Of a DNA stretch of 64,000 nt, positions 4,090 to 46,262 are shown piece after piece. This stretch comes from Ophelia neglecta. Its lineage: Eukaryota. The notes under the pieces are model-generated. The model worked only from the letters and a program-made list of their open reading frames with translations. It was not told the origin of the DNA and ran no database searches. A program made the translations under genes and the position numbers. The stretch's first letter is position 1; each line of letters opens with the position of its first letter. Location: contig OZ260663.1 in the NCBI GenBank assembly GCA_965285935.1, forward strand, positions 26,102,001 through 26,166,000. The letters run 5' to 3'.

Positions 4090-7000
4090 ATGTCTTGTCA
4101 CACACGAGCGTTCAACTGTCAAAATTGTTCGGCATCATTTCCAACTGGGCCATGTGCGAGGGGCCATACTAGGAGGGAGCATGGCATTCCGTGTGACGTG
4201 ACTGACTGTAGCCGAAAATTGATTGGAACGGATGGTCTTGCCCAGCATAAAGAGGCCAAACATACCGACAACCCAGAGTTAGTGACACACATACATTTAT
4301 ATATACAGGGTAAAAATGGAATATAAATCGAGTCAATTGCTTACAATGAAGGTATATTGTTCCCCGTTTAAATAGAATTTATTTAAATGGGGTACTATTT
4401 AATAGCAATGACAACCGAGTGTAGTTGACATACACACCGATTCCACAAACACAGCATCGATGTCAACACCTTCTCAAGCAACAGGTCCAATCCATAATTC
4501 ATTCAATTTTTCCTATAGTTGTATACTTCATAAACATGCAGCGACATTATTATTAACACTTTCAGGAATATTAAAACCCCATGTGAACAGTGCAACCGAA
4601 CACTGACTGGCCAGAAAGGCCTAGAGCAACACCAACAACAAAAGCATTCGGATGAAATACAAAAGTAAGCCCCATTTTATGTATCTACCAATCAAAAAAT
4701 ATTCCTCGATTTCACTATTCACTTTCTATCAATAATTTTAACCTATATTTCCAGTACTATTGGTCAATATGTACTTACTATTGAATTCACATATATGATA
4801 TTCTTTCATTATTATTTTCTAAAAATCAGTGAAACAAGTTTATTATCATTTTCGAAACAGCAATAAATCGTTTTTTTTTAAATTAGATATAAAGCGGCTA
4901 TAAAACAGACGTATTGTTGAAGGTGTAAAATTTTCCTATTGCTGCCTCTTACGTCTTCCATGCATATACAGTTTCTTTAAAAAATAGATAAACATTAATG
5001 TTAAGAGGCACTTGTCCACAATGACGTGTCTCACTTGATATTCGAAGGGTCAATGGGTTCAAATAAATCAATCATTGCAGGGAAAGAAGCACTAAATGTA
5101 AAGACTGCAAGGCCAAATTCTTTGACAATCTTGGGCTGAACCAGCACATTAAACATACGCATCCAGGTATAATTGTCCTACCATATTTGTTCTTTGCTCC
5201 AGACAGTGTAGCACAAAACATTATTGCAAAAAACTCAAAACAGTCTGTCAAGTATTCCTACTGAGGTTCACCATTATATGTATCTTTTATACTATTGTCA
5301 GCCGTGTTGCCAAGAGAGTCAATTCTGAACTTTGCGGGTAGAAACTTGAACTCCTACATTAAAGACAACCTACAACCCAATGAACCATTCAATACCAATA
5401 TGAGTAGAGCTGTTGACAAAATAGCCTCCTTTTTAAGAGAACATCCCGATCTGAGTGTCAGTAGAGTTGTAAAAGTAAGTGATAACGAATGGTTTCAGTA
5501 AATGTTGCAATATCCAATGCTGTTTAGGCGCCGCGCATTGTGGTCCGTGTTGAGCTGCTGCTCTGGCTTTCGTTCAGAATGGTGGGTTATTAGTGTTGAA
5601 TTGTAGTCTAATATTATATTTTCATATAGCATCTCAGAGCTTAGAGCGCAGCACCAATTAAATACAGTTTGCAAAATACAAGATTTTGATGGCATTTTAA
5701 ATTTATGTCCACACATACGACTTGTGGGTTATCTCAGTGAACTGTATTCCAGGGAGGATCAATGGCAAAAGGCACAGCCGTCCGAAACAACTCAGACATT
5801 GACTTGGTTTTAAATCTCAATCACGATCCTAGCATGCGCGAATTTGAAAAGAATAGAGGGGATCATCTGAAGCAAATACAAGGCTATTTACGAACGTGGA
5901 AAGATGACAACATAAATATACAGGTTGACAAATGTTCGTATTACGTGCTGAAATGCAATGCAACACTCAAGGGGTACAAGGACCAAATACCAGTTGATTT
6001 GCTAGTAGGCCGTGACATTCCTAAACCAGAGGTAAAATGACACTCAATGACACCGTTCGGATGTCTCGTGATCCTTAAAAGAGAATAACAAATTAAATGA
6101 ATGATATAATGTCTTAATACGACAGTTCTATTATAACATAGATTATAACTATATTAGGAATATCCTTTCAGCAGTTATACAAGGAAATGAACCAATCAAA
6201 TGCAGCCCAGTTCTCCTCCTCACTGGCTTTACTTCAACGAGATTTTGTAAGATCTCAGCCTCCCCATGTCAAGGACATCATACGATTAGTTAAAGATTGG
6301 AAGATTACGCATCTCAAAGTAAACTACAGAATTTCGAATTATTTTTCGGACAAACATGTGTATGAGTAGTAACACATCGTTTTATTTTGTTTATGACTTT
6401 AATTTGACATAACTATGGCTATAATTAAACACCAGGGGGTCGAAAACGTGCCAAACTCGTATGCTTTGGAGCTTATCACAATTAACGCATGGGAGAAAGC
6501 AGGAAAGCCACAAAAATTCAAGACTGACCGGGCTCTAAAGCATATAATGGGAAGTCTGAAGAATAACCGAATGATAGACGCGACATGGAATGTCAATTAC
6601 AATCCTCATGACTACAAAGGGCAAGCAAGTGACGAACCGTAAGAACATTTCTTGAGGAAGTATGGTAACATTCAAATAAGTACAATACTTTAAAAAGGGG
6701 TTAATTTCATACTTCTGCACACACACTTTATTTTTTTTATATATATATAGGCGATGCAGTGGCGGATGCAGAAATTTTGGAAGGGGGGCGAAAGAAGTTC
6801 CAAGGGTGACCTATGCTTTATAGGACGGGATTGCAGACAATTTTCAATGATACACAATGTAGAAAAGCTTTACATTGTCCCCGCTACCAACCCTCTGAAA
6901 CCACCTTGCGTGGGTCCTGAAATATGCCCTGGCCCGGCCCCCCCCCCCCTCCCTGAATCCGCCTCTGCGATGGCATGTTAAACATTTCCTTATACCCTAG

Positions 7001-7254
7001 GCCATTGCACCTAGTTGCTCAAATTACATTATTTTATTTTTTGGATATTCTTTTCTTACAATATAAATATCCGTTCATCTCATGGAAATGATCTGTAATA
7101 CGCCTCTCATTTCAGGGATGTACCATTTTTGTTGGATCCTGCTAATCCTTTTGAGAATGTTGCTGCTCGTTTCGACTGGAAAGACATTTCTAGAATGGCC
7201 GATGCTTCTATGAATAGTCCAGGATTGAAAGATGTTGAAGCCGGCTGGTGCTAG
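4090..7254 (+). CDS. OAS: OAS copy 1: 4x C2H2 zinc finger + 2'-5'-oligoadenylate synthetase, about 437 aa, 8 coding exons
   Basis: Exons 4090-4277, 4566-4664, 5081-5166, 5302-5474, 5753-6031, 6172-6318, 6436-6638, 7116-7254; all GT-AG, phases 2,2,1,0,0,0,2 join in frame (1314 nt). OAS motifs: VVK|GGSMAKGT, SDIDLV, third Asp in PVDLL, LQRDFV, IIRLVKDW, PNSYALELITINAWE, LLDPANP. Fingers: CQNC-x12-H-x4-H, CDVTDC-x12-H-x4-H, CEQC-x12-H-x4-H, CKDC-x12-H-x4-H. AATAAA at 7275. Confidence 0.92.
6757..6967. mobile_element. MITE (about 211 bp) in the last intron of OAS copy 1
   Basis: Imperfect 15-bp TIR CAGTGGCGGATGCAG...CTGAATCCGCCTCTG, internal G and C runs, CGATG on both flanks as a possible target-site duplication. 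Confidence 0.7.
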
Positions 7255-8234: not shown

Positions 8235-9213
8235 AGCCCCTGTCACACTGTGACGAGTTTGGCTCACGAGTTACCACGAGTTACAACTCGCCACAACTCT
8301 TCAGGTGTCGTGTAGGACTCGAAACAATGTCTTTGCATATCGTAACGATGTCTCTTTATGTCGCCTTTACTCGTCAAGCGGTGGCGAGAATTTTAAACGG
8401 TTTAAAATTGTCGTGCGAGTTTTCGTCTCGTACACATGTTGAAGACTTGTCGTAGAGGTGTCGCCAAAACTCGAACACATGTGGTAGAAATGTCTTCAGT
8501 TGTCGTCACTTCTCGCCCTGTTGTAAAGTCGTTCGATGGGCTACGAGTTTATCTGCGAGTTTGGGCGACATGAACGCGATCTCTGCTCGACATACAGCGA
8601 GATTGTACGTCTTCCCTTCAACATCTGTACGAGTTTCTGCGAGTTCTGTTCGACATGTCCTCGACATTGCTGCGAGTTGTGGCGATTCTATAAAAAGATC
8701 GTCTTCAGCAGCATCCTCTTCCATCTGGGCCAGAAATTCAATGTTTCTCAACCTCTGAGCCATGGCTGTGATGTTTTTTCCTACAAGAACCAACTGGAGA
8801 TTGATCCAAAAAGTGCTGGACCACCAGAATTTATACCCAAATTACTATATGTTGGCCTCACTCGTAAATTTCTCGTAGCTCACTCGTCATAACTCGTCAT
8901 TAACCCGTACACATGTCGCCAAAACTCGTGTAGTCTCGCCTAAACTCGTACATTCTCGTAGAAATGTCTTCAGCTGTCGAGAAGATGTCGTACACAGGTC
9001 GTACAGATGTCGATTAAACTCGTGTTAAATAGAATGTTATCGTACTAATCTCGTGTCAATGTGGAAGAGAACTCGAGCACAACTCGAGCAGGAGTCGAAC
9101 TGATGTCTCCATCACTCGAAATCATGGTCAACTCGTCGAATTTTCGGCGAATTATAACTCGCCAGCACTCGTCGTAACTCGTGGGCCAAACTCGTCACAG
9201 TGTGACAGGGGCT
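8235..9213. mobile_element. Non-autonomous PIF/Harbinger-type TIR element (979 bp)
   Basis: About 47-bp TIR AGCCCCTGTCACACTGTGACGAGTTTGGCTCACGAGTTACCACGAGT with 2 mismatches to the right end. TAA duplication at 8232-8234 and 9214-9216. Many internal ACTCGT/ACGAGT motifs; no transposase recognised. Confidence 0.88.
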
Positions 9214-9617
9214 TAAGAGAGCACCTGTCTCAACGCTCCTCCTTGGTTGTGATTACTTCTTCCTCGAAACTGATCGTTATATCAATAGATTTTAGCTTTC
9301 TAAAAGCTACTACCTTTGTATCATTTTTTGGCTTGCCTATATCAAGGGATAGGTGAACAGCAAAGTGGTCTGACATTGGACAAGACACATGCAAAGTGTT
9401 GATGATATTGTCATGATGGCATGAACAAACAAGAAAATATTGTTTAACCCAGCAGTATTGCGATCCTTTCGTTTTCCTTTAATTTCAGCGGCAAAAATAT
9501 ATGGACGAAAAATCACTTAAAATATGGTAAAATATTAGTATTTTCACGATTCTCACTTTTCAAGACGATGGGTGTCACGACTACATATCATATGTCAATA
9601 TTACTTTGTTGTAACGC

Positions 9618-9647
9618 TTGGTTCTGATTTTCCCAAAACCGAAACTA
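9618..9647 (+). promoter_or_regulatory. kB-like/ISRE-like motif copy
   Basis: TTGGTTCTGATTTTCCCAAAACCGAAACTA, followed about 270 bp later by a candidate first-exon donor (cag|gtacga near 9914). Confidence 0.5.
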
Positions 9648-12602
9648 ATGTCGAGAGTGTGAATTTTCCAATCTCGATCAAACTTAACAATGGACAATGA
9701 TTCACCCTCAGTATGTCCTACATAGGTTGTATTGAATAACCGCTCGTCGTTGTGAAATCTTCAGTCTATATTGCCGATCAAAGGTTGATGAGGTGTTTGA
9801 AGCAGTCGATGTCCGGAAATAGTGTTATGTGTTAGTGGTACACTATTGATTCATTCGGCCTTCTCGATACTAGAGATCATACATAGTAAACGCTCCCGTC
9901 ATCGTCTCAACAGGTACGAATGGATTTTCGTTAAACTTATTATTTGGTGGGAAAATATTACATCGTAGTGACATTAGGTCACGGTGGCCATATATGTTAA
10001 TAGTTGCGAACATACTTCTCCTAACCTGTTGTTGACAAACGATTTTTTAATTATTATATCGTTATCTAACCTGGGCTGTTATCTGTAAGGCACTTAGGGC
10101 AATGTGAGTTACAGAGTTACATACATACGTTGTATAAGAGGTACAACTAACGATGTCATCTGGCACAATAACCTAGTCATGTGTCCCATTTTTCTTTCCT
10201 ATTAAGCACCAGCCGGTCTCTTTTTACGAGCCTCAGACCCTTTCCTTAAGAACATATTTTAAATGACACAGTGTTCCTGCATACACTGGCTGTTATCATG
10301 TGACTTAAGGTGGGCGCGGGATGAGGCAAACTTGGGGGATTCTTGAATTGGGGGTAGAAAGAATGGTGATAGTAGTGAATGTAATGGAGTGGAAGGGGTG
10401 GTGGGGTAATATGGATTATAACTCGGCCACAATATGGCGAGTTGAAGCAAATACAATTATCGGAATTTATCTCACATCAGACATTTCTGCTTTTAACAAA
10501 TCGGCAGTCCTCGTCCTAAATGTAAATCAAGGTATAACACGACGAAAAGCCAATTTAAACTGTCTTCCCTTAACACTGTATATCGTCGGATGCGATCAAG
10601 CGGCAATTAGGTCAGGATTGCATATGAGATACTGGGTTTTGCCATTCCGTGTTAAGAGGCTAGTTATATTATAGTCCATAGCTTTCGATAAGTGCTAAAA
10701 GCTTCTTTCTCATGAGCCAACTTTCCAAATTACATTGACGCTGATTAATTGTTCTATCAGCAAATACAGAGATAATTTGAATAAACAAAATTGGGATGTA
10801 GCCAAGACACCCGAATTCTTTATATTGGCTTGATTAACAATTGATACATTTTAATATCGGTTCGATAGCTTGTCAGTTAATGGATGGAAAGGCTCATTCA
10901 CTGACTCACAGACATAACCAAAATAATAATAACATATCGTAGGCGATCCACTACTTATTCGGAGCGTACCTATACCCATGTTTGCTCATGTTCCCCCCCC
11001 CCCCCTTATATAATGTTCTTCAGTGCAAAGCATTAGTAATTTCTAAGGCTGTACTACCCAGTGCATAAGTATTTCCAATAGAAATTGTTCTTTAATGCAA
11101 TATAAGTAAATTATGTCACACAATTTCCTCAATATTCCGAGTATTATCGTTTTGAATTTGGAGTATATCGTAAACCTAAATTAGCTTTCCCGACCCCCGA
11201 CCCCAATCTTGATTTCGCGCCTTATGCCGCTGATGTAAAGTTGGTTCCCACCACTTTGATATTCCTTCCTTCGCCTCTGCAAGCGCATCCCTCAACTTCT
11301 ACACGTTAGACGTCATAAAGAATAACTGCAGTCATTTCCACTGACATAGGGAGATAGTTAACTTACAACGGCACCTCTTAACTCGTATATGATACACATG
11401 ATAACTGAAATATGTTAGGAAATAGAAATACATCTTTTTTGTCAACTTTTGAAAGGTCGAGTTCAAAATCCTCACTGCACGATGTAATTATTGCACTACC
11501 AACAGTCTGACTCAAGTGGTCCCCCACTTTCTCTTCCCTGGATTGGGCGCAGGTTACGGTCTAATCTCTTGGCCTTGTGCCTCTTTGCCTTTTGCCCTAG
11601 TTTTGCGAGCAGTGTCTTTGCCTGTTGCTTAAGGCTTGGCCGCAGGCTTTGACCAAGTCTCATGGCCATGGGCCTTTGGATCAGGCGTGGTCTTTTGTCC
11701 AGGTGCCTTAGGTTTGGGTCAGGCTTGGAAGCAGCTTTTCCAGTTTGTTGCGCTAGTGATGAAGGTTTATTCAGCATAGGGTTTGCGACTGATATCAAAG
11801 GGAGTGGATCCTTTACACGAGTTTTGCGCGTCTTGACCCAACACTTTACCAGCACCTGTGCCAGTCACGTTTATTGGCCTAGGCGCCTTGGGCAATATAG
11901 TCTTGTATATAATGCATGTAGCCTTAGATATGAATGGTGTCTCAATGACGTATGCGCTTTGGCTAAAATTAGCCCTACTGGAATGTCCACGAGGCAGCTG
12001 TATGCACCAAACCTCAGCACCAACCACATGCACCAAGTCTGGTTTAAGCAACATACTAGAAATAAAAGCAGACTAGGACACATATGTTTATGCAGAAAGA
12101 GTATGGTATTGAGGCCTGATGGCCTGCTGCCATGTAAGCAGGGAACACTAAGAATGTTTAGCATTCGCACAGACCATAACGTGGATTAACACGAGTCAGC
12201 AGAATCAGCATGCATGTTCTGTACTTTAGTTTTTCTTCCCAGGCTTTCTGGGCTTAATAACGATAAGATACCTTTACCATATAGTTTCAAATAACATTGT
12301 TTGAGAAATGGGTAGAAACTTGAGCATGCAGGTTGAAAAGCAGGCATCAGAAAAGGAGTGCATTCATATACAAAATGGCTGCGCTGTGATGGCGATATAT
12401 GATAGCATGAACAGACATAAAACTACTGTTTCAACTCAGTAGTATTGCGACCCCGTCGTGCGCCTTTAATTTCCGTGGCAAATAAATACTGACGAAAAAC
12501 CAGTACAAATAAGGTTAAATATTAGTATTTTATGATTCGCAGTTTTTTTTAAGAAGATGGGTGTCACGATTACATCTTATATGTCAATATTATTTTGTTG
12601 TT

Positions 12603-12638: not shown

Positions 12639-14845
12639 ATGTAGAGCGTGTGAATTCCCAATCTCGATCAATGGACAATGATTCACCCTCAGTCTGTTCC
12701 ACGTAGGTGGTATTGACAAACGGCCCGACGTAGTCAGATCTTCAGTCTGTGGTAACGTGTTAATTTTTACTCTGTCAGATCTCGAACTTGTTATGTGTCC
12801 CTTTTGTAATACGTTTATTTCAAGTTTGTTTTACCCAAGGGCCCCTGCTACTTCTTACCTAACTAGTGTATGGAGTTTTAAGAGAGCTGTTAGACCAATT
12901 ATACGTAGAAGTCAGCCTATATAATACGTAGGTTAACATTATACCTGGGATAGAAGAAACATTCTTATATCCCACATTTTACATGTATGGGCATGGCGTG
13001 CATTTGGTGTGTATGAAAATAGTGTGTATGCGAATATCGAACAAATAACTATAGAAGTGTCACGTAAAGAATAACATTGTTAGCATCTGCCTCCCTGTTG
13101 ACTTTCACTAAGAAAAAAGCCTAGCGGTTCTTGTATTTTATAAGTGTTCACTGCCTTAAGGTGAATTTGACAAATCTGTGTTTTTCTCACATTTGTGTCA
13201 TATCCACGCTTGGATGAGGTCGCAGTTGTGCGCACGCGCACTTCCCGACTGTTTTACCTTGTATTTTCAGCCCGACCTAGTAAGTAGGGAATGGAAATAC
13301 ATATCTTTAGGCATAAGTAATAAGATATTGAAATATTCAGCCGTAATAAACACCCCGTCATCAGTTTAAAAACAGATTCGTTGAACTAATTATGTCGGTG
13401 GGAAAAATATTACATCGCTTTGAAGTTATGGGGCAGAGAGTTGCGAACACACTTCCCCTGATGTGTTGCGGGCACATGCATGTTCAACTTAGATACCATT
13501 AACTAGCCGAGGTTGTTTTTTGTAAGGCAATACGAACAATGTGTATAGAGTCTCCATCCGTTTTCCGAGGGAACATGATATTTTCATCGATCCATTATTG
13601 ATCCGCTCAGTATACTGGCATTCGCTGCCTGTTATCATGTGACATGAAGTGGATGGGAGAGGCAAAGTACAGTGGGAATTAGGGGCTAGAAAGGAGGTTA
13701 GAAGTAGATGGAGTAAACGGGGTGATTGGATAACATAGATTATATCTGGGATACAGATTCACGCCAGATGGAGCAAATAGAATTATCAAAATGTATCTCA
13801 ACGGTAGACAACTATGATTAAAATAAATCTACCAGCATCCGCCTTAATATATATATATCAATGTTGATTACAATGAAGAAAGGCCACCAGTAAGACTGTA
13901 TACAGCCGAATTCAATAAAGCCGCACTTATATCTGTAAAGTATATGATAAGAATATGTTTGCCCTTCCAGTGTTCGGAGTCAAGTAATTTCAGTATTATG
14001 GATCATAAGTTTTCGATATGTGCCTCAAGCGTCTTTCACACGGGTCGAATTAACAACCAACACTGATACAGCATAGTTGGTCTACCACCAAATAAAGAAA
14101 CAAATTTGAATGTACAAAATTGGGATATGGCCCTTTTCTTCGTAAAGCACATCTAACATTAATTTGTTAATTACCAATGACACCTCAGCGTATAAAATTT
14201 AAATTCTGTCCAATAACTTTACGGTTAGTCGATGAAAAAGGCATTACTAAATAATAATAATAATGTTAATAAAAATGAATACATGTAGTATGCTTTTTGA
14301 CTAGCTACCACCATTTAGACAAATATTTGTTTATGCCCCATTTACATTTGTAGAAACGGGTTTAGGTGGTCAAAACAGTTTTGCTATAGTCGACAATCGA
14401 CCAGATCATCAGTATAAGTTGCGGCTGTTTGCCAGGGTATTACTTTAAGGTCCTGTGTGCTAACCCAGTGATATGAATTACGTTGGTTAAAAGGAACACT
14501 TTCACCAAACTATCTAAGAATGAACCACGACGTAATGACTTGTTTCTAGTTTTCAGTATTTTAACATCTAGACCAGTATTTGTTTTGCTAGAGCATGGAA
14601 GCCACACACAATGACTTTTTTCATGCTCCTTAACCCAAACCTTTGACCCTGTCACTCTTTAGTCTACCTTTATCAGTTTACCCAATATTAATCACCCAAC
14701 GGCTGAACAAATCTCAAATTTTTATCAGGATATTCTAATACATCAGAATGGGAAACTATATATTTAATTTTGTAACGTATAAAGCTTATATTACAGCAAA
14801 CTGTTTTCCTCAGATCATCTACTTCCCGGTACAAACGAAGCAAAC

Positions 14846-16980
14846 ATGGCATGGTTTACCCAGACAGGTACTTCTTGGATATATCTATAATCTTTTTGTT
14901 TTACTGGTTCGAAGAAAGCAGACTTGCATTATGCATTATCTGTCTATCATTACTTTTATTTTCAATTTCGCAATTGATTAATCGGGCAAATTTACAACTC
15001 AATTAAATTATCCCAAACAATAAAGCAGAGGTAGATATAATATTAACTAGTACGTTTCATTACAGTTGCATTGCCTTATGGTTCCTTCCTGGCGAATTCA
15101 AGCACCAACCTGAATACTTATATTGATGACAACTTACAGCCAGTGGAACCATTTAATACCAGAATGAAGGAGGCCGTTGACCAACTGGCATCGTTTCTCA
15201 GGGAGCATCCACAGCTTAACGTTAGTAAGGTGGTTAAAGTAAGTTCAGAAATATTTATGTTATATTTAGTTTTAGATTTGTGAAATCGCTGACCCATCCC
15301 TGTTATCCTACACATAAGCAATGTCTAGCTATGTGTTTAACCGACGGAAATAAAGTTACCGACACAATATGATATATTATTTCTGAAAAAAAAAATACAT
15401 GAAAAAATTAAATGTATAGTTGGTAGAAGGTGTTGATTAGGGGGTAGGGAAGAAGGTATTTGGGAATTTGGAGAGGATTTCTGGGAGGATGTTATTAGGG
15501 TTGCGACGGGTCGGTTGGTAGGTCATGTAGGTTGTTATTTTATTTGCCTACTAGTTAGCTACTTCAAGGTATACATAGCAGTATCAATTAGTTGCAGTCA
15601 AATATTTCAGAATTCATGTAGATTATTGAGGCCTTCAGACATTGACGCCAATTGTTTTGATAAATGCGCATTATTTTTTATGGTTCTTTCGTTGTCTCGC
15701 ACTATTTGGTTAATATTAAATTTTCATCAAGAGTGGATCCATGGGAAAGGGAACTGCCATAAAAGACGATGCAGACATTGATTTAGTCGTGTTCCTGAAT
15801 GGTTACAACTCCATGGCAGAGCTTGTCAGAGACCGAAGAGCAATGCTACAGAGGATAGAAGGCTACATCAGAGAAAGAGAAGTTACGAAATGGATATTGT
15901 GGTAAACAACACGTCTGAGTACGTTCTGGGCCTGACGGTGAAATTACGATCACATTCAGAAAAAATACCAGTAGACCTATTGATAGCCAGAGACTATAGT
16001 AGCTGTCAGGTATGTCATCCACCCATTGACTTAATAACTGTCAGTTTTTGCAAGTAGTATCAACTGCCGAAGTACTATTTAATTAACCTTGATTTTAGTG
16101 ATTATCGAACATGTACAATCTAAATAGCGCAATGGGTTGATCACAAAATTTTGACCTCAGGACATATACAGGGAGATGACATCTGGTAACTATGGTGCCT
16201 ATTCTACTTCACTGGCCCAACAGCAGCTGGACTTCGTCAGAGCAATGCCTCCAAATATCAAAAACTTGATACGACTCGTAAAACACTGGAAGAATACACA
16301 TCTAACGGTACGCCCAATAAATATGTCAAACAATACAAAATATAATCTTTAATATATTTACGGTGGACAATGTTCACTGCTTATTTCAAATTCTATGGAT
16401 TTCATTTCAAAATATTTTATTATTTATTGAAAAGGGCCGTACTGCCCCAAATTCATATGCCATGGAGCTCTTGGTTATACATGAGTGGCAGAAAGCTGGG
16501 AGACCCCAGCGATTTAACACAGACGGAGCATTCAAGCAGATCATGACAAGTCTGACATCCGGACATACTATCAAGGCTTATTGGGAAGAGAACTATCGAT
16601 ATGCTGACTTTAAGGGACAGGCAGCGGCTACAACGTAATACTAAAACATTTTTATAATATCCACAATAACAACTGAGATGCAACTTGCTGTTTTAGTTAT
16701 TTATCGGCAGAAAAGTCAATACTTTATATAGTTTTGTATTAATTACCACTTGTCAAAGAAGTATATATTTTTAATAGAAGATGGTGCACAAACGACGCCT
16801 AAAGATCGACGATTAAAAAAATATGAATCGTTCGGTTTCAGAAATGGTCCATTTTTGTTGGATCCTGCTAATCCATTTGATAATGTTGCTGCTCGCTTCA
16901 ACTGGCAAGATGTACCGAAAATGGCCGGAGCAAGTTTGGAAAGTCCAAAGCTTCGGTGTGTGCAAGCTAGATGGAACTGA
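14846..16980 (+). pseudogene. OAS: OAS copy 2: zinc-finger-less OAS with a 1-bp frameshift (pseudogene, null allele or sequence error)
   Basis: Candidate start exon 14846-14867 (MAWFTQT, phase 1), then 15066-15238, 15732-16009, 16161-16307, 16435-16634, 16842-16980. The catalytic exon is 278 nt versus 279 in copies 1 and 3 (GAAAG-AGAAG versus GAAAGGAGAAG near 15877), giving TAA at 15903-15905 before the third catalytic Asp. Confidence 0.82.
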
Positions 16981-18246
16981 GATGTTAGTTGTAAAATGTG
17001 TGTGCCACATGTCAAGCGTGAAAAGAAACAAGCAAAGTGTATGTACAATGTCACTTTAGTTAATTTGCAAATGAGATATATAGAAAGAGAAAAGTGCACA
17101 TTTAAATTTTGTCTTTTGTCTTTTTTGTTTGATTTAGTTCTAGCACAATATCATAATATTTGGCTTAAGGTTCTCATTAATAATTGGCTCATTTTTCACT
17201 GTTCTATTCAACTATTTAGTTGTTCCTGTGGTTTCGGTATATGTTTTTATTTATATTTATCTAGTATACTATATGTGCCAATGTTAATTCTACCGTAGTT
17301 TAGTGAACGTAATAAAAAAGTTTTGGGTGATTTTCAGTCAATGGATTCTTGATGCTCGTTTTGGAATATGTGTCCGAGCAGCCGACCTAGATTTAATGCT
17401 TGTACATTATTGATTTCCGTTCAAGCACAAAAAGTTCCCCCGTATTTAGTGATTATCCTTTTGGTTTAACTTTTTAAAATTGTAATAGGCAAACTATAGG
17501 GAGATTACTTCAATTAAATTTGGATGTTGTCTTGTCAGGCTCCCAGATCCCCCGGCTATGACTTTAGAAAATACGCCCCTTCCCCTGCACCCAGACATAT
17601 GGATTGAAATACACCCCCATGTGCCGGATAGGCAGTTTTATTTTAACTCCCCTCCTCCCATCCTGGACAGGGATGTCCTCTCCCCCATTGTCCGTGGAGG
17701 ACAATTTCTGGAAGAGCCCTTACTTTGTCTATCACCAGTAGCGTTGTATCTTTAACTCGTTGACGTATGGAGGTTTGCTGAAAGTTACTGCCTTATATTT
17801 AGTGTATTTTTTATTTTAGTATTTGGTGGCCGAATTGGAACATCCTGCTCTCTATTTTGTGTTTGCATTTTTTAAATCTGCATATACTAACACAGTGTCA
17901 AACCCAGCCTTTAACGTTCAGGTTCATTTTGTTTCTGCAGGCGAAATCTTTTGTGTCGTATTATATATGTTCAACACTTTCAGTTTAGCCATGGTGACAG
18001 GGAAAACTTATGCTGTATTAATGAAATAAGTATGCAAGCCTCGGATATTTTGCTTTTTAGCCTTATTAATATGATACTCCAATAGTAAAATAGCTGTTTT
18101 GTTAAATAGCTGCTTACCTTTAGAAGAGTAGATTTCAGTAAGATTAATTAATGCTCTTGGTTTACTGTTAGGATAAACTCAATACTGTTGGACAAATCAA
18201 ATATATATACTAAGAACTTAACCATAGTAAAGAAGCGTGATATTGA

Positions 18247-34267: not shown

Positions 34268-37200
34268 GATGTTGATTGTAAAATGTGTGTGCCACATGTC
34301 AGGCGGTAAAAAGAAACAAGCAAAGTGTATGTATAAGCAACATGTACACCTACACTATAGGGGATAGTGGATTTATATTTTCAAATGAGATAGAAAGAGA
34401 AGAGTGCTCATTTAAATTTTGTCTTTTGTCTTTTTTGTTTAATTTAGTTCTAGCACAATAACATAATATTTGGCTAAAGGTTCTCAATTATTATTAGCTG
34501 ATTTTAAAGAAATTGTCCTGCTGGGGGGGGGGGGCGGGTAATTTTCATGTAGACCACGTCACTCCCTCGGACACAACTTCTTGTGAAAACCCCAACACCA
34601 TTATGTGCCAATCTTAATTCTACCGTAGTTGAGTGAACGTAATAAAAAAGTGTTGGGTGATTTTCAGTCAATGGATTCTTGATGCTCGTTTTGGAATATG
34701 TGTCCGAGCAGCCGGCCTACATTTAATGTTTGTACATTATTGATTTCCGGTTAAAGTTAAAACACAAAATGTTCTCCCCGTATTTAGTGGGTATCCTTTT
34801 GGTTTAACTTGTTAAAATTGTAATAGGCAAACTTTAGGGAGATAACTTCAATTAAATTTGAATATTGTCAGGCTCCCGGATCCCCCGGCAATGACTTTTG
34901 GAAATAGTCCCCTTCCCCTGCACCCAGACATATGGTTTGAAATACATCCCCATGTGCCGGATAGACAGTTCTATTTTAACCCCCCTCCTCCCATCCTGGA
35001 CAGGGATGTCTTCCACCCCCACCCCCCCGGCACCCCCCCCCCACCCCCGGACAGGAATGTTCTTCCCCCACCCCCGCCCGTGGAGGACAATTTCTGGAAG
35101 AGCCCTTAGTTTGTCTATCACCAGTAGCGTTGCATCTAGAACTCGTTGACGTATGGAGGTTTGCTGAAAGTTACTGCCTTATATTTGGTGTATATGTTAT
35201 TTTAATATTTGGTGGCCGAACTGGAGCATCCTCGTCTCTACTTTGTGTTTGCATCAATCCCAGCCTTTCACGTTCAGGTTCATTTAGTTTCTGCAGGCGA
35301 AATCTTCTGTGTCGCCTTATGTTTAACACTTTCAGTTTAGCCATGGTGACAGGGACAACTTATGCTGTATTTATGAAATGAAGTATGCAAGCCTCAGCTA
35401 TTTTGCTCTTTAGCCATATCAATAAATTACCCCTATAGCAAAATAGCTGTTTTGTTTATTAGCTGCTTACCTTTAGAAGAGTAGATTTCTGTAAGAATAA
35501 TTAATGCTCTAGGCTTACTGTTAGGATAAACTCAATACTGTTGGACAAATCAAAAATATTTACTAAGACCTTAACCACAGTAAAGAAGCGTCATATTGAT
35601 TAAATGATAATCGTCAACTGTTCCCAAACAATTTCACTCCACGTAATCTTTGCTCTGTGTATTTTCGTCTTGTTGGAGAATCTTTTCAATGGAAATTTTC
35701 GTTGCGACAGCTTTTTAATTATACTGTTCACACTTAAGTAAAATCGGAATTAATGTCTAAATCCCTAAAGGAAAGTCATGACAATAGAAACATTGTACTT
35801 ATTGATCTTTTAACAGAATCACAGGAAATAAAATGCTTTATATGATTGTTATCATACTTTTACCAATAAAGTTAAAAGTAGTCGATAAGTTGCTCTTATT
35901 CATTAAAATATCTATGGATAGTAACCTGTTGGTGAATCAAGATAAATGCATTTATAAAACGCCATATCTGCTATTATTATTCTCTATCATAAAAGAATTT
36001 TATAGACAGGTATCGTAAACACTAAAATAAAAACTAACTTCCCTGTTGTTCCCATCAGATTTTAACTTATAATACAAAGAAATATTACTGCACAGAAGGT
36101 AATAAAGAAATCTATACTCTCTTATTGATTCATGCAAATGGTAGTTATATTCCACTACCACGGATCAATTAAAATATTTCAGAATAGAATTACTTTAGAA
36201 AAGTAAAGTGAATGACTAATAGGACACTTCGCTCTTGTCTCTTTTATTTTGGGCACATTAGATTTAGACCTGATCTGGACCATATACTGTATCGTTTTTC
36301 AGGTCATCTGCCACCAACACCTCCACCAAAAATTCCATATAACCTTTAAAAACCGATTCCGTACGCTAGATCGATTTATATAACAGGGTTTGGTCATAAA
36401 CGTTCCTTCAAATCTGTTCAATCCACAGGAGAATTTTGACCAAGTTAAAGACCAACGGAGTGTCTGATCATAGTGCTTTCTCCAAGCCATAACTGTCGGT
36501 TCGTGATATGCTAACGCATCGACAAAATAACTAACATATGGATATATGGATCAACATATAATATATAATTATGTGAACGCTAAGTGTTAAACAAGAATAC
36601 CAGCGCAAAACATCGACGTCTTTTCTTCTTTGAGTGCGATGCTGGGCACGGTTTATGTCAAGCATAAACATATTATGTGGTTTCTTATAGCAAAAAAAAC
36701 ATTCAATGTTACATGCTTACTTGTGATTTTCCGGTCGAGGCCTTCCTTATAGAAAAGTACCTGCAAATAAATGTCCCAGGCGTGCACCTAACCCAATGTA
36801 GTGTGTTCTTCAATCACAAAATTTAGGTGTTAACCTTTCTTTGGCATTTGACTATGTCGGCCACACCAACAAGATAAAGCAATAAAAAGTGAAGGTTCAA
36901 CCTATTTTCAAGTCTTATCCCGTGGCACTGTTCATGGTTTCATTCTACTCTACTCGAGAGAAAAGCGCTATAAAACAATTCAGTAAAGAAAATAGTTCCT
37001 TTATTTTAATTCATTATTACGTGTATGGACAAAACACACACCAGTATGGAGAGAAACATTTATATATGAGTAATATGGTTGAAATGTCCTTGCAATACTT
37101 AGGACAAATTGCACTTCAAGGTACAAAAAAATTCCCTGTATATGAACACAAAACAAAATGGAGCAATATTGAAGTTAAAAGTTTAGAATATGCGACAGTG

Positions 37201-38998
37201 CCAAAATAGTTGAAGTCACCAACATGACCAATTGCCGATTATAAGCATGTATGACGGTAGTGTCGAATATGTAGAAATGCCGAAACACTGAATGTGGAGT
37301 AAGACCGAAAGAGGCACCTCTATTGATTATTCTTATTGTTGCCAAAAGATATAATTAATATATACAATCATTAAAATGATTAAATATTTACATTAGATGC
37401 CTTCCTCCTGGTGGTTCACATGCTAGCGTTTAACGTTTGAACTTAATGGAAATCTCCTAGATACATATTGCACTTTGCTCTTAAATGTATAAAATTTTGT
37501 TATGATTATATACTGAATGATCTATTATATTCTGCCAACCAATTCATGTATACCAGTGTGAATAAATAAAATATGTCATTGTCAATATTTCTTGAGGGAC
37601 CAATACCCATGTGGGAATATATCATAGCTAAGTACATGTACTGTGACTAGAATGACATTAGCTCTCATATTCGTACACTGACGTACTTTGAGACTTTGAT
37701 CACTGTTAATAGATTAAATAAGTGTACGGTCATCCCTTGGCGCATTTCAAATATTTAGCTTGGAAGTTTTCTCTTTACAATTGGGTTCTGAGGTAAAACA
37801 GTATAGACAAAAAGTACGACTTGGGTATAATGTAAGTTTTTTGATTTGTGATAAGGATCTGCTTCAAGTTTACATGTCGCATGATGATTATCGTCCCCAC
37901 TTATTTTGGTTCCGATTTTTCCCAAAACCGAAACTAAACTGGTACTAAGTCGAGACTCTTCATTAAAAATAGGAAATGACTCAGCACGCACTTGAACGCG
38001 TAAACAGTATTGATCCACCGTCAGACATAATTAAACCTCCAATCAGAAATGTTGATCAAATGTCGAGTGGTTGAAGCAGCTAATATGCTGACGAGTGTTT
38101 TCGTGTTAGTGATGCAATATTGAGAGTCATTCAGCCCTCTGGTCACATCGGTTTGTAGTAAAAGCTTCGTCAACCGTTCAGAAAGAAAGGTAGGTATAAA
38201 TCTTCTTGAAAATGATTAGTGTGTTGGACAAACATTGAAAAGCAGTGAAGGTAGTTTGGCCTATTTTGGGTCTTAGTAGGCTATAACTCTCTTTACCATT
38301 GGCTCATACGTGCTTGTTCATGGCCTCCCAGGGAATCCCTCATTCCGGTTTTAGTTCAAACGTCATGTATGGTACACGACATCCTAAATTCAGTATCTCG
38401 AGGATCATTCATTCTAAATTTGGCATATTCAATGTATGACCGGTGTTATCAGCGGGCCTCTTTTCGGCGTATAACCCCCAATAGTCCTCCCGCTCGGATG
38501 GTCAAGTGGTTATACGCTCTTCAAGCCTAGAGCAATGCTATTCTAGCAATCACACCAGTCTCAACGAGTTGAACTTTATCATAAACCTAGGTTGATTAAT
38601 ATTGATACGCAAAAATTGGTTGGCGGGCAAACAGGTTTTGGTAGACTGTGTGCAGTGTTCGCAACATTTAGGGCAGTCCTTCAGAGATTCAGAGTTGCAG
38701 GTCAATTCAGTTTGCGCTTAATACAACGGTAGTAGTATAGGTGTTGTCTGAAAGTAGTACTTGATCCCTTTTCGATACACCGATACAAAACACGCATTAT
38801 GTAGCGGTTCTGTCTGTGAACGCAACTCACAATGGCCTCCATATTAACCTGATACCTAATACCTCTAGCTAAGATCGAGACAGCTGGCAATGTTAACGAG
38901 ACTTCATATGTCTTTTCCTTTTAATTCTACTAATTACGAAAGAACGTACAGCCAATAAATATATTCCTACTTAATTGTCTTTGATGCTGCTTTTAGTC

Positions 38999-39033
<35 letters not shown>

Positions 39034-41790
39034 GAGGGGGGGGGGCTCTTTCAGTTGCTATGGATACCCTTTTTAATTAATTAACGCTTTTATCAGCCGG
39101 GATTAAATCCGTGGCTCAGTTAATAACATTATTCGATTGGACGGTTCAAGATTTATTAAATCAATAATATTTGGAAATATCATCTTTAAAACAGTCACAC
39201 TGATCTCTGTCAGTTATCGCAATGTTCTCTGCAAGCTAATGATAACCATTTATTTTTAAAATTGTTTCAACGAAGATTGAGTCAACTGTATTCTTCCGTC
39301 TCGCTGCAGAGTATGGCAAAAATAAAATGGGTAATATTGCTAGCCCTTGTTTGATGTCATAAGTACACTACAACACGTATCAGCTACTTAGTCCAAATGT
39401 AGTTTTGTCTTATTTGCCTGCTATGTAACTGAAACCTGCCTGAGTCGCCTATTTAGTTTGCTTGAGCCACAGCAGAAACATGGCAGTGCATCCATGTGCA
39501 GTCGTTTTCCCAAGTCTGAGAATGTCTCCGAAATTCGCATTGTAAATAAACTATTAGACACTGTGTTTATCTGCTAGTCTGTGATAATCTACTAGACACT
39601 GCGATCAGACAGCCTGTCTGATATATTACCCGAATTAATCTATTGTGGCAAACATTACAAACGTATGCTCACACATGTTATTCGTTATATCTGGGGATCA
39701 GCTGATTGATAGTGCCAGTAGTGTGCCAGGGCAGAAGTAACGTTAGCAGATGTGATTCTTGCTTGTCGCTCAAAAATATTTCTAAACTATTTTTCAAGGA
39801 AAAGTGTTATCACCAAATGTCAGATCTATTTAATGTGTATTTTGACGGAATACACTTTTTCACTAAGCCTTTAACAAACCTGTAGTTTAGAATACACATG
39901 TGAGTGTAATGGATTGTAAGTTTTTTTTTATTATCATTTATTGTATTATGTATTAGGACCAATTTAAAGGCACTTCTTGATTAACGATTTAGTTTTCTCT
40001 GTGAGATATCCACTACAGTGTTTCTCACATCACTGCTAGGCTGTTGTGCCCAATATTTGAGGAGGACATTGGTCAGTGAATTCTTATTTATCATTATGCC
40101 AGGTGACATTCGAGGAGCGCCAGAAGACACAATGGCATCACATTGTTTATTTTGTGACAAAAGTTTCATCGACCGACAAAAACGCAGGAGCCACGCAAAG
40201 AAGGAACATGGCTTACCCTGTTCATTATGCAAGAAAAGAAATTGCATTGGGGACCAAGGATTGGCTGATCATACGAGAGTCAAACATGCGGGACAACCTT
40301 TTGTCGCTCAACAAAAGGAGACTAAGTCAAAAACTAGTAACGGGTAAGGGTATCATAAATCGGTTTATCGCATTGGATGGAACTATATCTTAAATGCTGT
40401 ATTAACCAGAAGAATGAAAATGTTTAATTCCGATTCGCTTTATAATGGTTTATAATTGTTGCAGCTCGAGGGAAGATTATGTCAATTTGAAATCGGGGAG
40501 GCTCGATAGTAAATTCTCAATTGGGTAATGCCCATATCAATATTGACAAGGTCAACTCAAATTTCAATCATTCTGTATCCCCGAACTTTTGTAATTAGAC
40601 GGCAATTTTTTTCTAGAAACCACTTTTCATAAAATAACGTTTAAAGTGTCATTAAATTGTAAATAGTCAAACTATAAATCATCAATGTCCAGCACACGGA
40701 TTCATTCTAGTAGCATTTATAAGGTCAGTGCCGAATGAATTTATTGCAGACTTAATAGAAAATATCTTCTTGTAAACATTCAATAAGTCCTTTATGGTAC
40801 AATCATAAAACTAATTAACAAATATGTTATCAATATTTTAGTATTCAAATATTCCCTTTCACGACTTTTCCTCATTCACGGCTATGTTTCTAAGTGGTGT
40901 TTTAATCATTGATTAGCAAAAAGAAGAAAGTAAGACTGCATCCTATATTTACATCCAATTATTTTAGTATACCGTGTGACCAATGTGGTCGAATACTTAA
41001 AGGAAAACATGGACTAAAGCAGCATAAAGAGATGAAGCACGGCGATTCACATTCAGGTAATAATTGTTTCATTTTTTGCGAAAAGAAGATGATATGTAAG
41101 GCGGTAGTTTCATATTGTTAGTTTGTTCTATATGTTATATATAAGGATTATGCCTGCCGTCACTTATATATTATAATCTTATTATGAGTCATTTCTGAGC
41201 CTACAGCACATTTCCCCATAACATATATTATCATTCAAATTCAATTGTACTTTTGGATGTACGTGTTCAACAGGGCAACATAGAAAGGTAGCATGCCTAA
41301 GAATATAATAGCTGAAGATATGTACGCAAATTACGTGTAAATAATAATCAAATACAAACTGGGAGTCAGTTAACACATAAACAGGTAAAAGTCATAACGT
41401 ATGATGTCTTCGACACATAATGGACATGTATACATAGCCTACAGGAGTTGTTATTTTGGTTATGCATTGTTTCAATTCATGTCTTAACGGAAGCCTTGGT
41501 AAACTGAAATATGTTTGACTATCATAACAATTTCCAATTTTCGAATTCACCGTAGCCAATTCAATCTCACCGTTATATACGTTCCGCTTATTGGGTTCAG
41601 AGATGCATTTTCATATTCTGGGCAAAAGGGCGAATTTCAAGATTTCACCTTTCATTCCTTGTATTTACGCCTTTATGTTTGGTACCCCCACTCCCACCCA
41701 CTGGCTAATTTACCCCGACCATATTGGTGTTTGTTGCTTAAAGTAGAAAATATGTATAGCCCTAAATGCATACTTACAAATAACTTCAGG
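32020..41790 (+). repeat. Segmental duplication unit B, paralogous to about 14450-31100
   Basis: Same order as unit A: OAS core, block X, block Y, zinc-finger exons. Roughly 90-96% identity by eye. Confidence 0.9.
37906..37983 (+). promoter_or_regulatory. kB-like/ISRE-like motif plus AP-1 consensus upstream of OAS copy 4
   Basis: TTGGTTCCGATTTTTCCCAAAACCGAAACTA at 37906-37936, TGACTCA at 37977-37983, candidate donor aag|gtaggt near 38190. Confidence 0.5.
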
Positions 41791-44700
41791 AAGTCAGGAA
41801 GTCAGGAATAATGAACTGTTGAAGAATACGCACATGTTAATTTAATATTCCCCTTAGAAATCGGTCCCGCACTTCGGTGTATCTATCTGCTTGACAATTG
41901 ACTGCTTTAACAATCTATACCAGCTTGCCTCCATGGGTAAACTATGTTCAATATAATAAACATACTCTAAAATTAATAATGCCTTGCAGGCAGCCTGGGT
42001 GGTGCGGCATGGATGGGTGTTCTAGGTCTACAGAACAATATCCGCCAAAGCCTGAAGGCGGCTGCTGCTCCGCAAGTGTACAATAGCATGAATGTTATTG
42101 GTAACAGCGGTAGTGGCGTGCGACAATATGCGACTCTACCTGGTTTTCACGGTCAAAGTAAGCACAACTTTAACTTTTCAAACTTGACAAAATCTCTCAA
42201 GCGTGATCTGACCTTGACCTTTAAGGGTGAGAGCTGATTCGCTCAGTGTAAAGCCATAGAGATTAATATTCAAATTATTGTATAACCTGATGGAAGCAAC
42301 AGGACGTTAGTTGAGCACGGTGACGACAGTGTATATATAGCTAGCGGCTATGAGTTTCCTTCTCCTTCTCTGCCCAAAGGGACTCTATGCCGCCACTTGT
42401 ATGCAAAATTTAAATTCCATTAGTTGCATGATAATCTGATAATTCGCTACATGTATGCATTAAAAAATGCCTTGTTAACATGTCTTAAGGACACAATGCT
42501 TTCAAATATTGTATTTAGTATTCTGTCGCTGTATGGTTGAAAACTAAAGATGAACCTACACGCTATCCGTACGCATCTCTTCAGAAATTTGATTGAACAG
42601 GATTTACATGTTTTTTTACACAATTTCTGATAGTTGTTTTGTGTGAGTACATTATTAAGCAAATTTCTAATCCCAGTTTGTTCCTTTTAATATTATAGCC
42701 TATTACTTGATGCCCGCCGCTATTTCTTAAGGCTTATAACAAGCCTGACAGTTACATAAATTAATTAATGAATTAAAAATGGTTAAGCTACTCCAATGCA
42801 GCTATGCATGGTTTGTCTCATGCACAGATTTGAATAAGTTGGAAAACATGACTTGCTTTCATATGCCCTGCTTGGTCAGTATGTCAAATATAATAGATGT
42901 ATGATATATATCCAATATTGGGTAGCGCATGTATAGACTATTTTCTTGGCTGTTTTTGCATATAAGTGGGCAAAATCATTCTGTTTTTGCCCCATTTGCT
43001 CCGCGCTTAATATACAGTAAATATACTTTTTCATGGTGAGCGCCGATAATAAGTTTATATGTTCCACAGATGTATAATGTAAAGCTTAAAATATATCATA
43101 ACAATAATACTTAGGTACACATTAATCAAAGTATTTTATGTTATAGTAATTGCTCAGCGGACGAAAATGCACTAATAATATCGAACAATATACTAATTCT
43201 TAAAAACTGTCTATTATTCAAGTAGTTTGTAACTGTCAAAGCCAAGAGCAAAATATATACAACTGTAATGACACAGAGAGAAAGTATTAGTGATTCCTCT
43301 AGTGATTTGGTGATGAAAAGGGAGCATTATTGATGACTATGCGTTTTACAGGCACACATCCTTATAAGTTCCCCGGACAATCATCGGTCAAGCTTCCCCC
43401 AGCTACTCCTGTCTCCCCAACCGGAAAGCAGTCAAAGGGTAAACACACTTAATATGTTTTGGCGAGGCGGTGAAAATATATTGCCCAGACATTATAAAAA
43501 TTATTACATTGTTGTCATCTAGTTATATCCTGTTTCCTTATTCGACATTGCTTATTGATTGAACTAGTCTATGATTCGATACACGACCTTGCTTTCTTCA
43601 AGTTCCGGTGTCCATATTTTTTAAATGTCTTACTTAATTTAAGTAATCGAGTATATTTCTGTTTCTCTATTCGACATTTCTTATTTTTTGTAATGAAGTT
43701 AGTTCCTCTATACCTATTCCAAATTCCTTACCTATTCGAGTCAAGTTGTTGCCTGTTTCCTTTTCTCGACCCTTAATTTTTGAAGCAAGCTAGTTTATTA
43801 TCCAATTGGCTTCAACAATTTACCACCCCAGCTTTATAGTCTTCAAAGAGAGACGAATTAATTATTTGGTCTAAACAAAAGGCAAAGTCATACTTCTTTT
43901 TAATACTCATCGAAAATAATATGGATTCAATGTTACCATTTTAAGTGTCAACTACCGCCAAAACTAACACTAGGCCTCAATTACTTCAGCCACTGAAAAC
44001 GCATTTTATAACGAAATATCTTAATCTTTATAACAGAATCGAATCCTGCAGAATCATTCCTGAAAAAACCTGATATTGATCTGAACACTTTCATAGTCGA
44101 TCACCTTCAGCCAACCGAAACATTCAATACAATAATGAGCGAGGTCATTAATGAACTCGCAACATTCCTCAAAGGTCAACAGGGCTTAAATATCAGTCAG
44201 ATTATTAAGGTAAACTTGTTAATTCCCACTTATATGGAAAAGAAATCAAACTTTGGTTAAACAACAAACTTCTTAATTTCTTGTTGGTCGTAATGAAATA
44301 GATTGTAGATTTTTAATGTTAATGCCTTGTCTTTATCTTGACATCCTGATTCAATAATAGCTAGATTTTTAAAGCATAGTTATTAGATCCCCTTCTCCCT
44401 AAAGCAGCGTTTTAATGATTTTAGGGTGGATCGATGGGAAAAGGCACAGCAATAAAGGAAAAGGCCGATATAGATATGGTGTTGTTTGTCAATGACTACA
44501 AAACAATGGCTGAGCTAATAAAGGGCCGTGCTGAAATGTTGGAGCGTATAGGGCGTGCTTTGGAAGGGTGGAAGATCAGCAAAGGCGAGGTAGAAATAGA
44601 CAAAGCCACCAGAACCGTTCTCAAAATTTCGGTAACAAAAGATTGTAAGGGTGAAAGAATCGTAGTACCGGTTGATGTGTTGATTGGGATGAATATTCCT

Positions 44701-46262
44701 CGTGATAAACTAAAGGTGAGGCTATTTACTTATTTATTTTGATTATTATTTTGTACATTTATCATTGTAAGCATTACATTGTCAAACGTAAATTACAATT
44801 GTGCCATTTGTGAACATCCAAACAACAAACTTGTCAAATACGTGTAGATAACTGTTTTTGTTTGTACAAAAGCCTAGTTGGATGAGGGGGTAAACTCTTA
44901 AATTTAACGGATATTCGCATATGTAACGTTGTCATTATTGGTCCATTTCCGTAGGCCTCATATGATAAGATGACAAAAAGGGATCACCAGGAATATTCGA
45001 CATCCTTGGCTCCTTTTCAATGTGAATTTGTCAGGGCGCTGCCTGCAAGCGTCAAAAACCTTATACGTTTGGTTAAACACTGGAAATCAACGCACCTGTC
45101 TCCGGTTTGTTCTTAAATATTGATTTAAAAGAAACACGCTGTAGTTTTTTTGCTGAGTTTAACTGGTATTCTAACTAATCCAGACTCGTTTGTAGGCTTT
45201 GAAATGGGCTCCAACATCATATCCGATGGAACTAATAGTAATTGACGAGTGGCAAAAGAATGGTCACAGAATGGAACGATTTGAAATTGCTCCCGCTTTC
45301 AAGCAAATAATGAAAATCCTGCTCGACAGTAAAAGCATAAGGGCAATATGGAATGAAAATTACTCATACAACGACTATTTTGGAAAGGCAAAAACACTCA
45401 GGTGATATACAGGCTTCGGCCGTAATTACATATCATGTTGTTTTGTGCTTTTCACCAGCTAGAAATCTTGCGCTCCTACTAGTTCCTACGTAGCTTTGGA
45501 AATACATTTGTGTAATATAAGGCGTTCGATTATTATTTCATATTGCTACTTCATGTATGTTCATCAGCAAACTGGTGTGGGTTTGTTTCGAATTTTGTAT
45601 TCAACGGAGTAGTTTCAATGAACATTGACATTGTGTGAATGTTCGATTACAGGTTCAATGAGCTCCGTGATAAATCATGTTGGACCACAAATCAGAAATG
45701 ACTATGACTAATGATGATTTTAGACTAAGCTAATATGGTTGAGCTTTTTTATGCATTCCTAAATGTTTAAAGTTGGGAAGAAATAACAACTACTAATTCA
45801 CATTGCAAAATAAATTAGACATTAAAGAATGACTACCTCTCCCGTATGCTAGCTATTTGATTCCAGTGGACCAACAAGATATATAATAGGGACAACGACA
45901 TATAGTTCCTTTCAATTTGTATGTCCTAGTTTATTTTTTACATTTAAACTTTTTTGTCGCCTCAGGGCAACTCTTTTGATGCAACCATAGTCAGTTGTAT
46001 TGCTCGTCTCAACGAGTGAGTTGTTAATAATCGGCCTAGCACCAACGGTAGACAGCTATTGGAAGGAATAATACCAGCTATTTCTATTAACATGTCACTA
46101 TTTCTTTTTGTTTTCAGCGATGGGCCATTCTTATTGGATCCCGCTAATCCTTATAACAACGTTGCTGACCGTTTCGATTGGGGAAATGTTGCTAAAATAG
46201 CACAGGAGTGTCTGTCGACTCCTCTGGTGAGAAATGAACGGGCAGGCTGGTACTCTTCATAG
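40132..46262 (+). CDS. OAS: OAS copy 4: 3x C2H2 zinc finger + linker + OAS, about 506 aa (about 421 aa without two optional linker exons)
   Basis: Exons 40132-40343, 40968-41056, [41990-42157], [43352-43438], 44037-44209, 44425-44715, 44955-45104, 45196-45401, 46118-46262; all phases compatible. Motifs IIK|GGSMGKGT, ADIDMV, PVDVL, FQCEFVR, LIRLVKHW, PTSYPMELIVIDEW, LLDPANP. Confidence 0.9.

Follow-up and report, generated by a model that had tools for sequence, protein, structure and literature searches.

Candidate zinc finger-OAS fusion genes in a tandem OAS cluster of the Ophelia neglecta genome

OAS enzymes are old and, to our knowledge, neither what activates them nor what reads their product has been identified outside jawed vertebrates. 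We analysed a 64,000-nt stretch of the Ophelia neglecta genome, called the window throughout (positions 26,102,001-26,166,000 of contig OZ260663.1, in a 762-Mb eukaryotic assembly of 223 contigs that was itself searched), which carries four OAS paralogs in tandem, three of them predicted to begin with an array of C2H2 zinc fingers. A modular finger array on a catalytically intact OAS unit would, if real, offer a handle on what activates OAS.

Vertebrate OAS1 (PDB 1PX5, 4IG8, 4RWN) combines a nucleotidyltransferase (NTase) core with an OAS1_C domain, and the window genes share this organisation from the first helix through the DPxNP motif, keeping the G-S pair, the D-x-D pair, the third catalytic aspartate and the RLVKxWK motif. 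The vertebrate protein begins at the OAS unit and is fingerless, whereas the window genes lack the start codon at that place and have three or four C2H2 fingers ahead of it. Its partner RNase L, moreover, is absent from the genome to which the window belongs. OAS2, OAS3 and OASL likewise add to the OAS catalytic unit an extra module altering ligand range or signalling (in part PMC10400998), but the modules they add, which arose in jawed vertebrates, are either OAS units without activity or ubiquitin-like domains at the C-terminus, not zinc fingers. The nearest relatives of the window genes, with 30-52% identity per exon, are invertebrate OAS, namely the 'OASb' of PMC10400998 and the OAS1-like proteins of Mytilus, corals, starfish and hemichordates. 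Invertebrate OAS occur without RNase L (PMC6307210, PMC10400998). The finger array of the window genes, however, was seen in none of the 64 proteins retrieved in the analysis, nor in any of the 42 OAS proteins returned by a word-based profile search. Full-text literature searches yielded no description of a finger-OAS protein, and the papers on OAS evolution (PMC10400998, PMC6307210) do not mention zinc.

The protein ZFR carries RNA-binding C2H2 fingers N-terminal to DZF, a domain with a template-free nucleotidyltransferase fold related to OAS (PMC3467086), in which the catalytic residues have been lost and which provides a dimerisation surface (PMC3467086; bioRxiv 10.1101/2022.06.15.495552). 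With several C2H2 fingers ahead of an NTase-fold domain, ZFR and Zn72D represent the closest known design, one that a preliminary description of the window locus did not mention. Unlike that of ZFR, the window domain keeps the catalytic triad and scores as OAS1_C and NTP_transf_2, and its fingers have the classical H-x4-H spacing whereas those of ZFR are of the U1/JAZ kind. A DZF identity (ZFR, ILF2/3) was rejected for the window domain, which reached 14.6 bits with DZF_N against a cut-off of 27.1 and retains the catalytic residues. If the fusion is expressed, finger-OAS would be a catalytically active counterpart of the ZFR design and would add to the domain shuffling in invertebrate nucleotide-second-messenger immunity.

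Similarity searches and domain scoring were made exon by exon, and gene models were built from reading frames and splice phases. The window is AT-rich (GC 0.32-0.42) and free of N runs. In a six-frame search of the genome, OAS1_C (PF10421) exceeded its curated cut-off at four places in the window, all on the + strand, and at one more outside it, on contig C2. With the exons of copy 1 as query, tblastn recovered the same five OAS exons, D to H, in each of the four copies, and PF10421 scored 28-45 bits per exon in all four against a cut-off of 19.9. In copy 1, exon D (5302-5474, + strand like all exons described here) encodes the N-terminal helix of OAS and has no ATG at its start; exon E (5753-6031) encodes the NTase core with GGS...DID...VDLL and matches NTP_transf_2 (PF01909) at 26.2 bits, the cut-off being 21; exons F (6172-6318), G (6436-6638) and H (7116-7254, with the stop codon) encode the OAS1_C domain, for which they score 35, 45 and 15 bits. 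The same exons lie at 15066-15238, 15732-16009, 16161-16307, 16435-16634 and 16842-16980 in copy 2, which has OAS exons only, at 32355-32527, 33019-33297, 33449-33595, 33723-33922 and 34129-34267 in copy 3, and at 44037-44209, 44425-44715, 44955-45104, 45196-45401 and 46118-46262 in copy 4.

The solved structures matched by the OAS exons in the PDB are those of OAS1, OAS2 and OASL only. Exon D of copy 1 aligns to residues 7-43 of porcine OAS1, the N-terminal helix, and the whole OAS unit is therefore present. Exon E of copy 1 opens with GGS and has D-I-D; in the alignment with porcine OAS1, its segment GGSMAKGTAVRNNSDIDLV falls on G60-S62 and the D-A-D pair. The GGS...D-I/V-D motif recurs in all copies, 1 to 4, and the third catalytic aspartate lies in IPVDLL (copies 1, 2 and 3) or VPVDVL (copy 4), matching the VDIL/VDLV of homologues. 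The preliminary description had reported four OAS paralogs in tandem with their three catalytic aspartates retained; both points held, with four PF10421 places, exons D-H at each, and the D-x-D pair and third aspartate (VDLL/VDVL) in every copy. In the OAS family such a unit goes with dsRNA-activated synthesis of 2'-5'-linked oligoadenylates, an activity that is only putative for the window genes.

A pattern scan of the + strand found ten C-x2(4)-C-x12(13)-H-x4-H motifs, every one upstream of copy 1 (four fingers), copy 3 (three) or copy 4 (three). Markov-resampled sequence gives an expectation of 0.26 per window for this relaxed motif; with strict spacing, 7 were observed against 0.04 expected. 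Exon A of copy 1 (4090-4277) contains the start codon and fingers 1 and 2, separated by the linker H-GIP-C, and leaves in phase 2 through the donor GA/GTTAGT. Exon B (4566-4664; 99 nt, symmetric phase 2/2) encodes finger 3, and exon C (5081-5166), entered in phase 2 and left in phase 1, encodes finger 4 and is followed by a 135-nt intron before exon D. In copy 3, fingers 1-2 are in exon A (29758-29969) and finger 3 in exon B (30257-30345); the finger exons of copy 4 are A (40132-40343) and B (40968-41056). The four zinc-ligand positions are invariant in 10 of the 10 fingers, whose consensus reads PC-x2-C-xRxxIGxxGLxxH-xxxKH, and in most of them, counting from the second cysteine, position +4 is L or F and position +10 is L. 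Fingers 1 and 2 are spaced by 3 residues (H-GIP-C, H-GLP-C) and the remaining linkers measure 10-22 residues; the last finger ends 2-5 residues ahead of the first residues of the OAS unit. Ten motifs with invariant ligands bear out the earlier account of C2H2 fingers, mostly C-x2-C-x12-H-x4-H.

The fold and the type of these fingers were approached by several comparisons. A profile of the ten fingers matched only C2H2 fingers in the PDB, a matrin-type finger appearing solely at E=7, and the top Pfam model for the two-finger exon was zf-C2H2_2. AlphaFold2 (AF2) applied to a 12-finger alignment gave a beta-beta-alpha model (strands 3-5 and 12-14, helix 15-26) with a predicted local distance difference test score (pLDDT) of 85. 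The top 50 Foldseek matches to this model were all classical C2H2 fingers (template modelling score, TM, 0.6-0.77; root-mean-square deviation, rmsd, 1-3 A), with weak E-values because the model has only 32 residues. Single-sequence AF2 of exon A reached a pLDDT of only 41, and the ESM Atlas returned only generic small C2H2 clusters. The JAZ/ZNF346 (U1-like) type, to which the fingers had at first been likened, did not stand up: PF12171 (E 0.08-0.2) and PF12874 (E 0.016) remained far under their cut-offs, the spacing is H-x4-H and not H-x5/6-H, fingers 1 and 2 are just 3 residues apart, and only classical C2H2 fingers were matched. Judged from their sequence, the window fingers are of the classical C2H2 type, with nothing pointing to JAZ/U1. 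They may reasonably be expected to bind nucleic acid.

A further N-terminal motif was noticed among the relatives. Eight Mytilus OAS (P0024-P0027, P0032, P0036, P0040, P0061) share a conserved N-terminal C-x2-C-x15-H-x6-H, for example FPFLCNICGPEDRRFKSEKDQQRHDEMTKRH. Pfam does not recognise this motif, and the set includes transcript-sized Logan contigs. It may be a single zinc finger and a distant counterpart of the window array.

That the finger exons and the OAS exons of the window are joined into one mRNA is probable, on support that is indirect but convergent. All predicted junctions of the intact models are GT-AG and in frame, and the open models of copies 1, 3 and 4 encode 437, 412 and 421 amino acids. 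The in-frame splices at 5166/5302, 30345/32355 and 41056/44037 proposed in the preliminary description were recovered as predictions, each with canonical GT-AG signals in phase 1, and with open models in three of the four copies. Both lineages, that of copy 1 and that of copies 3 and 4, have exon A ending in phase 2 and the final finger exon ending in phase 1.

The start of exon D provides a further argument. In every copy its frame lacks an ATG and is closed by a stop a short way upstream, and the exon opens at about OAS1 residue 4-7, exactly where the relative L005 has its ATG (K-M-L-P-H-D against A-V-L-P-R-E). The residues ahead of the first internal methionine of exon D are conserved among the paralogs and with OAS1; they are therefore translated, so an upstream start is needed. 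This conservation as protein argues against the finger exons belonging to separate small genes, as does the distance of just 135 nt in copy 1 from the last finger exon to exon D, with donor and acceptor in matching phase. Across the 762 Mb, finger exon A has three matches, all at these loci (copies 1, 3 and 4), which excludes a module that is dispersed or carried by transposons; its confinement to these OAS genes again speaks against an independent zinc-finger gene. Copies 1 and 4 share 42% identity over the OAS exons and 39-41% in exon A, with no nucleotide similarity between them. These old paralogs both keep the fingers, their ligands and the splice phases, and the phase and order so preserved are hard to reconcile with unconnected genes.

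A comparable arrangement was found elsewhere. The exhaustive protein search returned P0009, a 149-aa exon-E-like open reading frame (ORF) located on an 85.9-kb eukaryotic contig (locus L003; ENA ERZ25071447 ctg84550, gene region 9170-10315). At 9170-9760 of this contig, one unbroken ORF encodes a methionine, two C2H2 fingers, a basic linker resembling a nuclear localisation signal (NLS) and an exon-D-like helix. After a short intron comes an exon with GGS...DVD...VDLL, and a retroelement lies downstream. The top Pfam model for the finger ORF is zf-C2H2_2, as for the two-finger exon of the window, and the ORF returned no matches when used as a protein-search query. Here a single ORF spans the fingers and the beginning of an OAS-like domain, another observation at odds with separate finger genes.

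Taken with the ATG-less exon D, the conserved phases and the unique finger exon, the L003 ORF favours, as the most economical reading, a complete OAS unit, apparently competent in catalysis, that is preceded by a finger module, as the preliminary description had proposed. We hold the finger-OAS architecture to be likely real for copy 1 and somewhat less so for copy 4; for copy 3 the balance tips only slightly in its favour.

The cluster has a complex history, in which copies 2 and 3 are most involved. Self-comparison delimited two tandem duplication units, ~14460-31349 and ~32036-41867 (overall span 14460-41867), and the junction between them falls in the copy 3 intron. Each unit extends from ~0.3-0.6 kb upstream of an exon D to ~0.8-1.0 kb into the intron past a finger exon B. 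The first contains an internal tandem repeat of ~4-6 kb (18249-24264 against 24264-28588, 82-87% identity), and this lengthens the spacer that separates copy 2 from the fingers of copy 3, compared with its counterpart. Between copies 3 and 4 the finger exons are about 97-98% identical, with 6 of 297 nt differing, and the OAS body of copy 3 shares ~94% DNA identity with that of copy 2. It follows from the boundaries of the duplication units that copy 3 joins a copy 4-type 5' end, promoter and finger exons included, to a copy 2-type OAS body: it is a recent chimera produced via tandem duplication. Copy 3 illustrates how tandem duplication with intron breakpoints can spread a new sensor architecture.

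Copy 2 is a frameshifted pseudogene. One G is missing at 15876, which reduces its exon E to 278 nt and shifts the frame, and a read-derived Logan contig (X3 record 21), covering 15838-16064 without gaps, reproduces the deletion. No finger exons were found in the 7.8 kb upstream of this copy. The earlier count of four OAS paralogs accordingly stands for exons D-H, which all four possess; that the fingerless one has lost 1 bp of its exon E, and is broken, had escaped the preliminary description.

A candidate short, fingerless first exon of copy 2 was also noted at 14846-14867. Its ATG lies in GCAAACATGG, a good Kozak context, and its donor, CAG/GTACTT, lies 197 nt ahead of exon D and is in phase 1. 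The candidate sits in a 292-bp segment (14700-14991) that is missing from copy 3, and may be where genes of the copy 2/3 lineage originally started, or a chance occurrence.

On the whole, we consider it rather probable that the window holds a lineage-specific cluster of nucleic-acid-responsive, OAS-type 2'-5' nucleotidyltransferases in which C2H2-encoding exons have taken the place of the ancestral start. Upstream coding exons would have replaced the ancestral OAS start codon and thereby added an N-terminal array composed of a tight two-finger unit and one or two single-finger exons. Copies 1, 3 and 4 are intact, copies 1 and 4 being the old paralogs and copy 2 the pseudogene; the finger and OAS exons would be spliced into one mRNA. 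The fingers would then supply an extra binding surface or tether for nucleic acid, most likely RNA, comparable to the fingers of ZFR and the inactive domains of OAS3. Ligand binding would switch on the synthesis of 2'-5'-linked oligonucleotides, and these would act on an effector other than RNase L.

The genome gives some context for this last step. Its one KEN/Ribonuc_2-5A locus (PF06479; L009, G000:C8:73452000-73461999) comprises luminal-domain exons of the IRE1 type, an active-looking kinase with VHRDIKPHN and KEN exons, and no ankyrin repeats. The sole KEN locus being IRE1-like, there is no RNase L in this genome, in line with what PMC10400998 and PMC6307210 lead one to expect. This fits the preliminary description, in which the effector was left unnamed.

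Several observations weigh against a cluster of working, finger-bearing OAS enzymes. The sequencing runs found to hold the locus are three DNA-type runs from one sample, with no RNA run among them. An exhaustive HMMER search with exon E gave no match above 43% identity, a close homologue being absent from 15 billion predicted proteins; exon E of copy 3, used as a protein-search query, gave no matches. The Pfam C2H2 models (zf-C2H2, zf-C2H2_4, zf-C2H2_2) score the window fingers at 18-20 bits, below their cut-offs of 25-27, a common outcome when isolated fingers are scored by exon. The methionine conserved inside exon D is a possible start for a fingerless, N-truncated protein. The D-H layout recurs in contigs L004-L008 from other relatives, with no fingers in the DNA available; the lack of fingers in three relatives' contigs is what counts against the reading. 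As for L003, the OAS1_C exons F-H were not seen before the contig end, and its finger ORF has no significant match in the genome of the window, which leaves its fingers without established homology; L003 may reflect convergence or a gene that is dead. The copy 3 fusion, for its part, is a by-product of where the duplication broke. Lastly, the ratio of non-synonymous to synonymous substitution (dN/dS) is 0.74 between copies 2 and 3, and all 6 substitutions that separate the copy 3 finger exons from those of copy 4 are non-synonymous (0 synonymous), which is not significantly off neutral. The recent copies consequently show no purifying selection, although such tests say little on young duplicates.

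These substitution patterns bring us to the alternative that survives best, namely that the cluster is largely decaying, that one or two copies work and that copy 3 is a non-functional accident of duplication. We regard this as unlikely, if to be taken seriously. The frameshift of copy 2, its dN/dS against copy 3, the six out of six non-synonymous finger changes between copies 3 and 4 and the duplication junction inside the copy 3 intron would all agree with decay. Copies 1, 3 and 4, on the contrary, keep open frames, splice signals, zinc ligands and catalytic residues, and a high dN/dS is also usual in immune genes under diversifying selection.

A bolder form of the nucleic-acid-responsive reading holds that the fingers give OAS an unprecedented ligand specificity, recognising single-stranded RNA, DNA or a viral motif by sequence or structure, and that the 2'-5' oligonucleotide signal is received by a protein with no relation to RNase L. 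We find this doubtful. If true, invertebrates would have a sensor-messenger pathway of independent standing, and an arms race fought by exon shuffling would be reflected in the variable number of fingers and the chimeric copy 3.

It is improbable, in our view, that the fusion is real and that the fingers, instead of sensing a ligand, place the enzyme (in the nucleus, on chromatin or with a protein partner) or regulate it by protein contact. Their closest matches are indeed DNA- or protein-binding C2H2 fingers (BCL11A, CTCF, Wiz, Helios, EEA1), one match, the SUF4/ZNF207-like 6j0d, has the same H-x4-H spacing, the linker after the L003 fingers is NLS-like, and no dsRNA-binding finger family was matched in Pfam. 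The OAS family is nevertheless activated by nucleic acid, the last finger lies only 2-5 residues from the OAS unit, and the extra units of OAS2 and OAS3 are a precedent for nucleic-acid-binding modules on NTase-fold proteins. ZFR offers the same precedent (PMC3467086). These counter-arguments are inferential.

Quite improbable, finally, is that the finger exons are separate small zinc-finger genes while the OAS genes begin at different, unrecognised 5' exons or at the methionine inside exon D: the lack of an RNA run among those found, the conserved methionine, the introns of 2.0 and 3.0 kb before exon D in copies 3 and 4 with their many chance ATG-to-GT candidates, and the possible first exon of copy 2 (ATG 14846, donor 14867, phase 1) in a segment absent from copy 3 would leave room for it, but the short phase-matched gap of copy 1, the genome-wide restriction of the finger exon, the phase and order kept between old paralogs, the protein conserved before the methionine and the single ORF of L003 all tell against it.

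Beyond the cluster, the genome contains a fifth, far more divergent OAS-like gene on the - strand at G000:C2:34110000-34114500 (L001/L002), recognisable by GSLGTGTTTRSRMDIDFIL, VKVVKHWR and RDPANP; no finger exons were found within ~9 kb upstream of it. In the window, the segment 3542-3568, TTTCATTTTCATT (GAAAATGAAA on the opposite strand), has a core resembling an IRF site or interferon-stimulated response element (ISRE) ~530 nt upstream of the copy 1 start. The strict ISRE consensus has 0 matches in the window and kappaB 1 distant match, no more than chance, and the upstream regions of copies 1 and 4 have no significant block in common. Downstream of the cluster, a chitin synthase gene occupies 49600-58600 of the window on the - strand. 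Its ORFs 56959-57963 and 58087-58551 match ChitinSynthase_IV_N (57.6 and 18.8 bits), and ORF 52665-53048 has a WGTRE motif and a weak match to Chitin_synth_2.

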